Sequence record: NC_042081.1
Direction: 5' to 3' (one strand)
DNA length: 64,000 nucleotides
Shown: in pieces, positions 3,567-12,625 of the stretch
Position numbering within the stretch: position 1 is the first letter of the stretch
Layout: each line of letters starts with the position of its first letter
Position numbers and translations under genes: made by a program
The notes under the pieces: generated by a model
Told to the model about the DNA's origin: nothing
Database searches by the model: none
Seen by the model: only the letters and a program-made list of their open reading frames with translations

Positions 3567-5855
3567 ATGTTAAAAACTATCATTAAACTAGACGGTACTG
3601 AAGAAGCATACTCACCTGCTAAGATTAATGGTTGGGGTGAATGGGCAGCCCAACATCTTGGCGATAAGGTGGATTGGAGTAGTGTTGTAATGGATGCTGT
3701 TCAAGCTCTTGGCGATAAAACTTCATCACAAGAACTACAATTACAACTTATTGAAGAATGTCTAAATCGTAAGACATGGTCTTATTATCTAATGGCTGGT
3801 CGACTATATGCGATTTATCTTCGTAAGAAGTTCTATGGTCTAAATGGTATCCCAACTGTTAAAGCGCTTCAAACCAGGATGCGTAAAGATGGTATCATTG
3901 TTAAATTAGATTATAGTAGTAAAGAATACGCCCAGATTGAAAAGATCATTGATCACGATCTTGACCTACTTTGTCCACATTTCTCACTTCATCACATTCG
4001 TGGAAAGTATGCTCTACGTAATCGTAAAACTGGTCAAGAATATGAGACTGCCCAGTTTGTGTATATGCGAATGGCAATGGCTCTAGCTGAAAAAGAGCCA
4101 GCTGAAACTCGCATGACTCATGTGGAGAATTACTATAAACTACTTTCTAATAAAATTCTTAGTGCGCCAACACCTAACTACGTTAACCTAGGTACTAAGC
4201 TTCGTGGTTTTGCATCATGTTGCCTATTTGCTTCTGGTGATAATGGTGTATCACTGGCAATGGGTGATTATATTGCTAACATCATGACCCAATCATCAGC
4301 GGGTATTGGTGTTAACTTAATGACTAGGTCAATTGGTGATCCTATTCGTAATGGTCTAATCATTCACCAAGGTAAGAAACCATACATCGATGTAATGGGT
4401 AAAGCAGTACGGGCTAACCTACAGAATGGTCGAGGTGGTGCTGTTACGTGTTACTACAGTGCTTTCGATCCTGAAGCAGATATGATTACTCAGCTACGTA
4501 ATCCACGTTCTACTGAGGATAGGAAGAACCGTGATCTTCACTATGCATTCCTAAGTAATAAGTTCTTTGCTAAGAAAGCGGCGCAGAAAGATGGCATGAT
4601 CTTTGTATTCAATCCATTTACTGCACCAGATCTACATGAGGCTTTCTATAGTGGTAATATTGATAAGTTTATTAAGCTTTATGAAAAATATGAAGCAGAT
4701 CCTAAATTTGAGAAAACCTATGTAAATGCTCGGGATCTTCTCAAATCAATGCTAGTTGAAGCATATGAGACTGGAACCATCTATTCAGCTCAAATTGATG
4801 AACTCAATCATCATACACCATTTAAAGAACCTATTTACAGTTCTAACCTCTGCCTTGAAATCGCAGAACCCACTAAGCCTTACTATCGAATGGAAGATCT
4901 TTATTCTAGTGAGGATCATGGTCGCGGTGAAATTGCTACTTGTTCACTGGCTGCTATTGCAGTGGATAATGTTCCTGATAAGCAAACTTATGAAATGGCA
5001 GCTTACTACGCACTTAAGATGATTGACTATTGTATCCTTAATGCAGAGTATGCTTTCCCACACCTTGCACTAACCGCTAAGAATCGAATGAGTGCTGGTG
5101 TTGGTATCATGGGTCTAGCTACGCATATGGCACGTGCTGGCCTTAAATATAGTAGCGATGCTGGTAAAGCTGAAATCCACTTCATTGCTGAACGGCATAT
5201 GTACTTCCTTATTAAGGCGTCACTTAAGATTGCTAAAGAACGTGGTAATGCGCCTTGGATTCATAAGACTAAATGGCCAGAGGGATGGACTCCACGTAAG
5301 ACTTATAATAAGTCAGTGGACACTATCATTGAAGGTGGTTTTGAAGAACTTTATCCATGGGATGAGCTAGAGAAAGAGATTAAGGAGAATGGTGGTATTG
5401 CACACTCCGTACTAGCTGCATACATGCCGGGTGAGGCGTCATCTAAAGCACTAGGATCAACTAATGGTCCATATCCGGTACGTCGTCTAATTCTTAATAA
5501 GACTGATAATGGCGCACGTGTACTATGGGCTGCTCCATATGGAGATGATGATTCTTATGTGTATGAATCAGCTTATGATATCCCCACTAAAGATCTTATT
5601 GATTGCTATGCCATTATTCAAAAGTGGACTGATCAAACAATCAGTGCGGACCTCTATCGACGCATTGTAGGTTCTGAAAAGATCTCTTCTAATGAAATGC
5701 TAAGTAATCACTTCTACATGGTGAAACGTGGAATGAAAACCCGGTATTATGTAAATCTAGAAACAGCAGCAGGACTTGATATTAAATCACTCGAACGTGC
5801 TGTTGAGGTAACTAATGCCGAAGTTGGGTGTGCAGGCGGTTCGTGCACTCTTTAA
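3567..5855 (+). CDS. nrdA: ribonucleotide reductase class Ia alpha subunit
   Basis: N-terminal ATP-cone (IIKLDG), APTP, ASCC, SNLCLEI, TCSL, KTRYY and C-terminal CAGGSC; start placed at ATG 3567 (track starts at 3516). Confidence 0.97.
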   Translation: MLKTIIKLDGTEEAYSPAKINGWGEWAAQHLGDKVDWSSVVMDAVQALGDKTSSQELQLQLIEECLNRKTWSYYLMAGRLYAIYLRKKFYGLNGIPTVKALQTRMRKDGIIVKLDYSSKEYAQIEKIIDHDLDLLCPHFSLHHIRGKYALRNRKTGQEYETAQFVYMRMAMALAEKEPAETRMTHVENYYKLLSNKILSAPTPNYVNLGTKLRGFASCCLFASGDNGVSLAMGDYIANIMTQSSAGIGVNLMTRSIGDPIRNGLIIHQGKKPYIDVMGKAVRANLQNGRGGAVTCYYSAFDPEADMITQLRNPRSTEDRKNRDLHYAFLSNKFFAKKAAQKDGMIFVFNPFTAPDLHEAFYSGNIDKFIKLYEKYEADPKFEKTYVNARDLLKSMLVEAYETGTIYSAQIDELNHHTPFKEPIYSSNLCLEIAEPTKPYYRMEDLYSSEDHGRGEIATCSLAAIAVDNVPDKQTYEMAAYYALKMIDYCILNAEYAFPHLALTAKNRMSAGVGIMGLATHMARAGLKYSSDAGKAEIHFIAERHMYFLIKASLKIAKERGNAPWIHKTKWPEGWTPRKTYNKSVDTIIEGGFEELYPWDELEKEIKENGGIAHSVLAAYMPGEASSKALGSTNGPYPVRRLILNKTDNGARVLWAAPYGDDDSYVYESAYDIPTKDLIDCYAIIQKWTDQTISADLYRRIVGSEKISSNEMLSNHFYMVKRGMKTRYYVNLETAAGLDIKSLERAVEVTNAEVGCAGGSCTL

Positions 5856-9688: not shown

Positions 9689-9735
9689 ACTAGTGTACCT
9701 TAAAATATGTATAAATAAAATAGAGTAATTATAAC

Positions 9736-10188
9736 ATGATCAAAAATGAACTTTTACCAGGGCTAATCTATGCCCAAAAAGAATTTGATAAAATTGCAGC
9801 TAATGTAAAAGACTATGATAAGTATAAAAGACGCGAAGCTGGTAGGGCAAGTGCCGTTTTAAGAAGTCTAGTGAGCAATATTGTAAATCAGAATAAACCA
9901 TCCTCACTTGAACATGAAGGCAAAGTTAGTACTACTAATACTAATGAATATTTAGAAGAAGTTAATAATTACTTCTTTAACATTAATAATATTAAATTAA
10001 TTTCTCCTAAACTCATAAAAGAGAAATTAACAATTGATCTAATGAATATTTATGTTAAATGGAATATGATTGGAGTGGCTGGCCGAAATGATGTTCCAAT
10101 TATTGAACACAGAATTAATGATTGGTGCGAAGTGACCGATGTCTACATTAATGGTAATAAGATAACTTCTTTACAATGGCCACGTTGA
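9736..10188 (+). CDS. hypothetical protein
   Basis: 150-aa ORF. Confidence 0.7.
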   Translation: MIKNELLPGLIYAQKEFDKIAANVKDYDKYKRREAGRASAVLRSLVSNIVNQNKPSSLEHEGKVSTTNTNEYLEEVNNYFFNINNIKLISPKLIKEKLTIDLMNIYVKWNMIGVAGRNDVPIIEHRINDWCEVTDVYINGNKITSLQWPR

Positions 10189-10246
10189 ATTTAAAATAAG
10201 TTGTAATAAAATACCTAGCATTACATGTTATGTATTGAAGCACAAT

Positions 10247-10331
10247 GCCCGAATGGTGAAATTGGTAAACACAGAAGACTTAAAATCTTCCGGCTACGGT
10301 CTTGTCGGTTCGAATCCGACTTCGGGCACCA
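10247..10331 (+). tRNA. tRNA-Leu (TAA)
   Basis: GCCCGAA/TTCGGGC acceptor, GAAGA-CTTAAAA-TCTTC anticodon arm, long variable arm, GGTTCGAATCC, CCA. Confidence 0.95.
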
Positions 10332-10340
10332 ATTTAAATA

Positions 10341-10416
10341 CGGAGTGTAGCGCAGTTGGTAGCGCGCCTGCTTTGGGAGCAGGATGTCGGGAGTTCGAGT
10401 CCCCTTGGGCGCGCCA
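10341..10416 (+). pseudogene. chimeric tRNA-Pro (TGG) with unpaired acceptor stem
   Basis: D and anticodon arms normal; 5' CGGAGTG cannot pair with 3' TGGGCGC (1 Watson-Crick + 2 wobble of 7); T stem has an A-C mismatch; ends GCCA. Confidence 0.75.
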
Positions 10417-10422
10417 TTTAAT

Positions 10423-10498
<76 letters not shown>

Positions 10499-10504
10499 TA
10501 TTCT

Positions 10505-10530
10505 AAAGAGTAGCTTCGGCTACTCTTTTA
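10505..10530 (+). terminator. terminator of the tRNA cluster
   Basis: AAAGAGTAGC-TTCG-GCTACTCTTT. Confidence 0.8.
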
Positions 10531-10582
10531 TGTTGCCATGGGTTATCTTATGAATTAAAATGATTTACTTGAGAGCACACTC

Positions 10583-11590
10583 ATGTTTGAATTACTATTA
10601 TCGCCAGATATAGGCGAAGAGTTACCCTTGGTTGGATTTAATGAAATTATTAAATTAGGTGATCTACCTGTAGCGTTAGCTGGTACAATGTCATATGTGG
10701 ATGGAAATACACTGTATGTTGGATCTGGTCATCATACTGAAGGACAAACAGCTGCAACTGTGTTCAGACGTTTTACCATATCGCCATTTGCCGATATAGG
10801 TGCAACTGCTTCTGGAACATTCTTACCAGGGGTATCTTTAGGATTTGGGACATTACATAAGAATAACTTTATTGTTTATGGCGGTATTACTGGATGGAAC
10901 TCGGCTGGTAATGGTGGTACGGGAACATCTAACTTTATACAACATTTTGATATAGCTACAGGCAATAGGGTTGAGCGATATAGTGGTCCCGTACCACTTT
11001 GGGGCACAGCCTCCGCATCAGATGGTAATGATCTTATTATGTGTGTTAACCCAGTTAGGGTAAATGCAATGCGGTTAAAACCATCAAGTAAGTCTTGGCT
11101 TAGCGGGCAAGACTATTCAGGTGGTGCTCGTTCAGGTCAACAGTTATTCTTTTATAATGGTTACTTTTACCATTTTGGTGGTTGGGATAATACAAAGAAC
11201 ATACCTAATCTTGAAGTTTATCGATATAATGCAACTACCTTAATATGGGAGCAAACACCTTGGATGATTATACCTGCTGATAAAGGAACAATCTGGCAAG
11301 GTAATGGTTATGTAGATGGGGACTATTTTAATTACCTTAACGCTGTTGATGTCGGCGGTGTAACTAAAATGTTTGCACAACGTTTTAATATTAGGCGCCG
11401 GAAATGGGCTGAACCATTTGAACTAGGTATCGGATTCCTTAATATTTCATCTATAGCTAAAGGTCCGGATAATAGCATGATCATTGTAGGTGGATCTAAA
11501 ATGCCAGTTGGTGGTGGAGCATATATGTTGAAAAGCCAATTGTTATCAGGTATCTATCAGGTAAAACTAGCGCCATTAATCATTGATTAA
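10583..11590 (+). CDS. Kelch-like beta-propeller protein, possibly virion-associated
   Basis: Repeated hydrophobic-GG...Y/W units (LYVGSG, FIVYGG, FYHFGGWD...VYRYN...W, MIIVGG). Confidence 0.75.
   Translation: MFELLLSPDIGEELPLVGFNEIIKLGDLPVALAGTMSYVDGNTLYVGSGHHTEGQTAATVFRRFTISPFADIGATASGTFLPGVSLGFGTLHKNNFIVYGGITGWNSAGNGGTGTSNFIQHFDIATGNRVERYSGPVPLWGTASASDGNDLIMCVNPVRVNAMRLKPSSKSWLSGQDYSGGARSGQQLFFYNGYFYHFGGWDNTKNIPNLEVYRYNATTLIWEQTPWMIIPADKGTIWQGNGYVDGDYFNYLNAVDVGGVTKMFAQRFNIRRRKWAEPFELGIGFLNISSIAKGPDNSMIIVGGSKMPVGGGAYMLKSQLLSGIYQVKLAPLIID

Positions 11591-12549: not shown

Positions 12550-12625
<76 letters not shown>

Follow-up and report, generated by a model that had tools for sequence, protein, structure and literature searches.

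The window analysed here is a stretch of 64,000 nucleotides from sequence record NC_042081.1, and the 451 bases around the element under study match the genome of Pseudomonas phage SL2 (MF805716 / NC_042081) with 100% identity and unchanged coordinates. SL2 is a phiKZ-like jumbo phage obtained from hospital sewage in Germany. The locus consists of gp012 (the homologue of PHIKZ302), an intact tRNA-Leu(UAA) at positions 10247..10331 of the plus strand, a tRNA-like element at 10341-10416, an intact tRNA-Asn(GUU) at 10423..10498, also on the plus strand, and gp013 (the homologue of PHIKZ298). The tRNA-Leu gene was called by ARAGORN and matched the Rfam tRNA model over its full length (62.7 bits), and the tRNA-Asn gene was likewise called by ARAGORN, with an Rfam score of 69.3 bits and two nucleotides in its T loop that differ from the phiKZ copy. 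Nothing was called by ARAGORN between these two genes. The corresponding locus of phiKZ includes, in this order, PHIKZ302, tRNA-Leu, tRNA-Pro, PHIKZ301, tRNA-Met, PHIKZ300, 299.1, 299, tRNA-Asp, tRNA-Asn, and PHIKZ298. This same layout, with intact Pro and Asp genes, was found in about 40 phiKZ-like genomes and in FBPa36, and it is also kept in U1B, a Phikzvirus that is ~90% identical in the tRNA-cluster region. Since phiKZ, FBPa36, and a phage as distant as U1B share it, the phiKZ layout is the ancestral one and the element found in SL2 the derived state.

The element at 10341-10416 reads CGGAGTG-TA-GCGC..GCGC-G-CCTGC-TTTGGGA-GCAGG-ATGTC-GGGAG-TTCGAGT-CCCCT-TGGGCGC-GCCA. Its D arm and its anticodon arm (UGG in a 7-nt loop) are intact and identical to those of phiKZ tRNA-Pro. 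The T arm, with stem GGGAG/CCCCT and loop TTCGAGT, shows four of five pairs, one of them the wobble G49.U65, whereas A52.C62 is a mismatch. At the acceptor stem, the opposing strands CGGAGTG and TGGGCGC form three of the seven pairs (G3-C70, U6.G67, and G7.U66), two of them G.U, and a CCA is encoded at the 3' end. The sequence-only reading had described a tRNA-Pro(UGG) that is canonical as far as the T loop and then continues into an unpaired, foreign 3' part, and had noted that the CCA and the anticodon arm are retained; both descriptions agree with the sequence.

Alignment to phiKZ revealed the origin of the two parts. The first 61 nt of the element (10341-10401) are identical to tRNA-Pro(UGG) of phiKZ (PHIKZ_t06), whereas its last 24 nt match tRNA-Asp(GUC) (PHIKZ_t04) in an identity that, from 10393 to 10425, includes the 3' end of the Asp gene and continues along its downstream spacer. 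Nine nucleotides, GTTCGAGTC, are common to the T arms of both genes and are counted in both matches. The last Pro-specific base is A10392, where tRNA-Asp has a G, and the first Asp-specific base is C10402, so the crossover must lie within 10393-10401. Three segments can thus be delimited along the plus strand. The unambiguous Pro-derived part (10341..10392, identical to L001:4192-4243 of phiKZ) spans the acceptor 5' strand, the D arm, the anticodon arm, the variable loop, and the T-stem bases GGGA, with the fifth base of that strand, G10393, already within the shared 9-mer. The crossover interval (10393..10401), defined by three-way alignment, holds the single remaining copy of GTTCGAGTC. The Asp-derived 3' end (10402..10416, identical to L001:5701-5715) provides CCCT of the T-stem 3' strand CCCCT, whose first C (10401) belongs to the 9-mer, followed by the acceptor 3' strand TGGGCGC, the discriminator G, and the CCA. 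As both parts are identical to phiKZ tRNA genes, the likeness of the element to a tRNA is not a matter of chance, and the absence of any substitution relative to either parent gene in the three-way alignment shows that the event is recent.

These results confirmed the crossover at the shared 9-mer that had been proposed from the sequence, with Pro sequence up to it and Asp sequence after it, and also the AGGGG T stem foreseen for the partner, as phiKZ tRNA-Asp has AGGGG/CCCCT. The 5' end predicted for that partner, GCGCCCA, is actually GCGCTCA, which pairs with TGGGCGC through a U5.G68 wobble. A tRNA-Arg had been considered as the donor of the 3' end; this candidate was discarded, given the identity of that end to phiKZ tRNA-Asp(GUC), the phage's own gene. 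The comparison of relatives for separate Pro and Arg genes led to the same result: in phiKZ, FBPa36, and U1B, the 3' end TGGGCGCGCCA was found exclusively on tRNA-Asp(GUC), and no tRNA-Arg is present in their clusters.

The junction itself was found in SL2 records only when 50,697 phage records were searched, and a 28-mer across it gave 0 matches in IMG/VR. A single match to this 28-mer was obtained in a metagenome collection, on a GC-rich bacterial soil contig unrelated to the phage. This contig (Ga0210406_10026054) carries, on the minus strand at L007:269-340, a degenerate Arg(ACG)-like tRNA remnant that includes the 3' 28-mer of the hybrid and gave no ARAGORN call; it may be the remnant of an integration site. 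The Arg-type likeness perceived in the 3' end has, therefore, a counterpart in this remnant, but it is irrelevant to the donor in the phage.

In phiKZ-like phages other than SL2, the match to the SL2 sequence stops at window position 10404 (query position 255), inside the T arm of the element. The starts of the two phiKZ copies of GTTCGAGTC (L001:4244-4252 and 5692-5700) are separated by 1448 bp, and the copies are inside a 26-nt stretch of 77% identity, and SL2 lacks exactly these 1448 bp, which in phiKZ comprise the 3' end of tRNA-Pro, ORF301, tRNA-Met(CAU), ORFs 300, 299.1, and 299, and most of tRNA-Asp. Both repeats and the DNA between them are thus present in the relatives, one repeat remains at the junction, with collinear sequence on either side. 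The loss of intervening DNA proposed from the sequence did take place, although the genes involved were not adjacent, as had been supposed, but separated by ORF301, tRNA-Met, and ORFs 300, 299.1, and 299. For the four deleted ORFs, PHROGs returned families of unknown function only and Pfam nothing significant, and none of them has a nuclease domain. Taken together, we consider it highly probable that the element is a pseudo-tRNA, which arose when 1448 bp were deleted from the SL2 tRNA cluster and the front of tRNA-Pro was thereby fused to the tail of tRNA-Asp.

We also considered that the junction could be an artefact of the assembly or of the library, made in silico or on a chimeric template, while the SL2 virion would carry a full cluster of the phiKZ type. 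The junction is known solely from the SL2 records, and the deletion rests on a single short-read assembly (Nextera XT, 2x150 MiSeq reads, SPAdes). Moreover, no public sequencing run contains more than 0.85 of the sampled words, no RNA run contains the stretch, and none of the four runs examined (X1, X2, X10, and X14) includes the junction. In runs X2 and X10, one contig holds both flanks at a distance of ~1.43 kb, as in the undeleted layout; in run X14, a contig extends from the left into the right flank over the same distance (~1.43 kb), consistent with that layout too, and run X1 yielded short pieces only, with no junction. However, the exact repeat measures just 9 nt (26 nt at 77% identity), far below the k-mers of the assembler, so a collapse of the repeats would be unexpected. 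Such a collapse would also have left the unique 1.4 kb behind in a contig of its own, and the authors of the SL2 genome report one complete genome. In addition, the two parts meet in perfect tRNA register, as fits a biological crossover. An artefact is, thus, improbable.

A further possibility concerns the route to the deletion rather than its product. A single unequal crossover between co-infecting genomes, one FBPa36-like on the left and the other phiKZ-like on the right, would generate the same hybrid, and can be regarded as a variant of the deletion proposed above. SL2 shows 99.9% identity to FBPa36 over the 6 kb to the left, up to 10404, and 93.6% to the right, whereas its identity to phiKZ is at most 97.7% on the left and 99.2% on the right. 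The nearest relative switches between the informative sites 9735 and 10499, and the junction falls inside this interval. Nevertheless, there are just two informative sites near the junction (10499 and 10500), the heavy divergence from FBPa36 does not begin until 10660, and the mosaic boundary could have arisen by ordinary homologous exchange, separately from the deletion. Because of this scarcity of informative sites, a mosaic boundary followed by a later deletion within one genome is equally possible, and the single crossover is put forward as a tentative route that we hold to be somewhat doubtful. Whatever the route, SL2 is a mosaic across window positions 9735-10660.

Covariance-model and folding analyses were in agreement with the deletion reading. 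Rfam RF00005 matched the hybrid at model positions 8-63 only, with 40.9 bits, and the intact phiKZ parents over their full length, with 70.8 bits for tRNA-Pro and 68.4 bits for tRNA-Asp. The minimum-energy fold of the hybrid (-27.7 kcal/mol; z = +0.32 vs shuffles) contains no canonical acceptor helix, but a weak, shifted pseudo-acceptor that sequesters the CCA, whereas the fold of the intact tRNA-Pro is a clean cloverleaf (-35.0 kcal/mol; z = -2.87). The centroid fold of the hybrid is not a cloverleaf either, with the 3' GGCGCGC paired to GCGCGCC of the D/anticodon region, and the ensemble is heterogeneous. Compared with PHIKZ_t06 and PHIKZ_t04, the hybrid completes neither parent; it has lost the acceptor stem and has an A.C mismatch in the T stem. 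The view that the product cannot be a normal tRNA is, thus, well founded on the loss of acceptor pairing, the partial Rfam match, and the missing ARAGORN call.

The published description of SL2 lists five tRNAs (Leu, Pro, two Asn, and Thr), and its supplementary table places a tRNA-Pro at 10343..10416, a call made in 2017 by PHAST or tRNAscan-SE. Our Rfam scan of the whole SL2 genome gave four full-length tRNA matches plus the partial match of the hybrid, from which it follows that the published tRNA-Pro is the hybrid. In a shifted register, five of seven acceptor-like pairs can be formed, so a tRNA finder run at low stringency can accept the element. The RefSeq record of SL2 has no tRNA features in the hybrid stretch.

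Regarding the mechanism, the deletion could have occurred by recombination of the illegitimate or short-homology type, or by replication slippage, between the GTTCGAGTC 9-mers of tRNA-Pro(UGG) and tRNA-Asp(GUC). The event removed the 3' end of tRNA-Pro, ORF301, tRNA-Met(CAU), ORFs 300, 299.1, and 299, as well as three-quarters of tRNA-Asp from its 5' end, so that 61 nt from the start of tRNA-Pro are now followed, in register, by the final 15 nt of tRNA-Asp. Lying between tRNA-Leu and tRNA-Asn, the hybrid would still be transcribed as a passenger, from a promoter upstream of tRNA-Leu. The middle promoters of phiKZ consist of an A-rich repeat followed by TACT ~22 nt ahead of the start site, and PHIKZ301 is among the genes that carry the motif (Wicke et al., PMC8244752); in phiKZ, PHIKZ301 is the gene immediately downstream of the Leu-Pro pair. 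The leader upstream of tRNA-Leu in SL2 (10203..10246, plus strand) is conserved and, by eye, shows an A-rich run and then TACC (10212-10215). It resembles the motif of the PHIKZ301 unit and constitutes a putative middle-type promoter for the tRNA unit. A comparable leader is found upstream of tRNA-Asp in phiKZ and has been lost in SL2. At the other end, a terminator-like hairpin, AAAGAGTAGC-TTCG-GCTACTCTTT followed by T, was recognized by eye at 10505..10529 of the plus strand; it was negative in a simple terminator scan and is also visible in the SpF41 alignment. As the leader upstream of tRNA-Leu is conserved and promoter-like, the hybrid is probably carried along in a Leu-hybrid-Asn precursor terminated by the 10505-10529 hairpin.

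Once transcribed, the hybrid would not be processed to a mature form by RNase P, nor would ProRS charge it. At the acceptor end, the ProRS identity elements are G72 and A73 according to the E. coli rules, and the hybrid has C72 and G73 in their place, both from tRNA-Asp. This replacement, together with the lack of an acceptor helix, argues against both maturation and charging, and an RNA that is neither matured nor charged would be without function. On these grounds, the hybrid is very probably dead, and it probably represents a recent, neutral pseudogene, that is, an ordinary deletion scar of a single isolate.

In contrast to this, the hybrid could be a functional RNA, acting as a decoy or sponge that draws an anticodon nuclease or a modification enzyme to its intact Pro(UGG) anticodon arm, or as a spacer for the processing of the flanking tRNAs. 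To our knowledge, no anticodon nuclease specific for tRNA-Pro(UGG) has been described. In favour of a role, the hybrid keeps whole D and anticodon arms, most of its T arm, and an encoded CCA, and it very probably lies inside a transcribed unit; phage tRNAs are, in addition, known counter-measures against tRNA-targeting defences (PMC12409363). Against a function, the hybrid occurs in one isolate only, with no conservation and no compensatory change, its fold does not exceed shuffled sequence in stability and its ensemble is heterogeneous, and the event that originated it also destroyed three tRNAs. A functional role is, therefore, extremely improbable, and the decoy for anticodon nucleases suggested in the sequence-only reading found no support, the junction being exclusive to SL2 and free of any sign of conservation.

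Another case of tRNA loss in the same cluster was found in phage 124.01 (PQ758385), in a background otherwise ~99-100% identical. This deletion differs from that of SL2 in that it comprises 186 bp with respect to phiKZ, takes away both tRNA-Asp and tRNA-Asn cleanly along with half of the terminator hairpin, and generates no hybrid gene. Its endpoints (L003:4587-4590) lie outside the tRNA T loops, unlike the SL2 junction. The 124.01 deletion shows a second, independent loss in the cluster and, with it, that the tRNA genes of the cluster are dispensable. Viable deletions are likewise known in the tRNA cluster of T4 (psu-b mutants), where laboratory growth tolerates them, although T4 is unrelated to SL2. 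Conserved tRNA segments constitute short direct repeats in phage clusters. The T4 homing endonuclease SegB, which acts on tRNA genes, shows that double-strand breaks and recombination can take place at the conserved GGTTCRANTCC motif in the T arm of such phage genes (PMC2330249). In SL2, there is no evidence for an endonuclease at the junction, and the deleted ORFs contain no nuclease domain. A joint reading with two alternatives, in which the hybrid, transcribed as part of the Leu-hybrid-Asn precursor, would persist as a stable, uncharged tRNA-like RNA whose Pro(UGG) anticodon arm is intact and titrate a host factor such as an anticodon nuclease, a modifying enzyme, or RNase P, or else the junction would result from a T-arm break by a tRNA-gene homing endonuclease during the co-infection of two phiKZ-like phages, is in our opinion very unlikely. 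The origin of the hybrid by a deletion between short repeats is the reading maintained here.

Variation was also detected at the Asn genes of these phages. The second tRNA-Asn(GUU) of SL2 (window 12550-12625) is uninterrupted, as it is in PA7, Churi, and many other phages. In phiKZ (L004:551-1400), 124.01, 2PS, 6B, and Brmt, this gene is split right after the anticodon (GACTGTTA|) by a cassette of ~774 nt that contains, in this order, a type II tRNA of 84-87 nt (with a long variable arm, G73, and anticodon GUU), a hairpin, and the HNH endonuclease PHIKZ296. A group I intron was discarded as the cause of the split in phiKZ, as there was no Rfam match and the insert does not end in G. The insert resembles a homing-endonuclease cassette of the free-standing type, interrupting a tRNA-Asn gene and bringing along its own structurally odd GUU tRNA. 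A full-text literature search found no paper naming PHIKZ296. In U1B (L005:2177-2306), it is the first tRNA-Asn, after tRNA-Asp, that is reduced to its 5' half, ending in GACTTTTA; through the same CGATTTCA linker, this half runs into the type II GUU tRNA; the HNH gene is absent, and the normal Asn terminator comes directly after. The presence of the type II GUU tRNA at the first locus of U1B behind the same linker indicates that it has changed places from one Asn locus to the other, presumably by way of recombination in the 5' half that they share.

The T loops of the Asn genes differ as well. The first tRNA-Asn of SL2 has AC at 10481-10482, vs GT in phiKZ, so that its loop reads TTCGAAC. The loop TTCGAGT is found in phiKZ tRNA-Asn and in the second Asn copy of SL2, and TTCTAAC in the 3' half of the split second copy of phiKZ. 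The distribution of these variants suggests gene conversion between the two Asn loci.

With respect to the gene content of SL2, our analysis leads to a correction of the published set of five tRNAs, as the phage has four intact ones (Leu, two Asn, and Thr) plus a Pro/Asp hybrid that is very probably dead, and lacks the tRNA-Pro, the tRNA-Met, the tRNA-Asp, and the four small ORFs that are present in phiKZ. For its CCA, GAU/GAC, and AUG codons, SL2 would depend on the tRNAs of the host after the deletion. In the long ORFs of the window, CCA accounts for 46% of the Pro codons and GAT for 81% of the Asp codons. SL2 is a productive lytic phage (PMC5707522), and its host range is broad. Since SL2 is viable and lytic despite this codon usage, the three lost tRNAs are likely dispensable for its growth, and the phage represents a natural knockout in which tRNA-Pro, tRNA-Met, and tRNA-Asp, together with ORFs 299-301, appear dispensable. 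More generally, the conservation of the T-arm motif makes phage tRNA clusters prone to in-register deletions of this kind, leaving hybrids that gene finders can mis-call as tRNAs.
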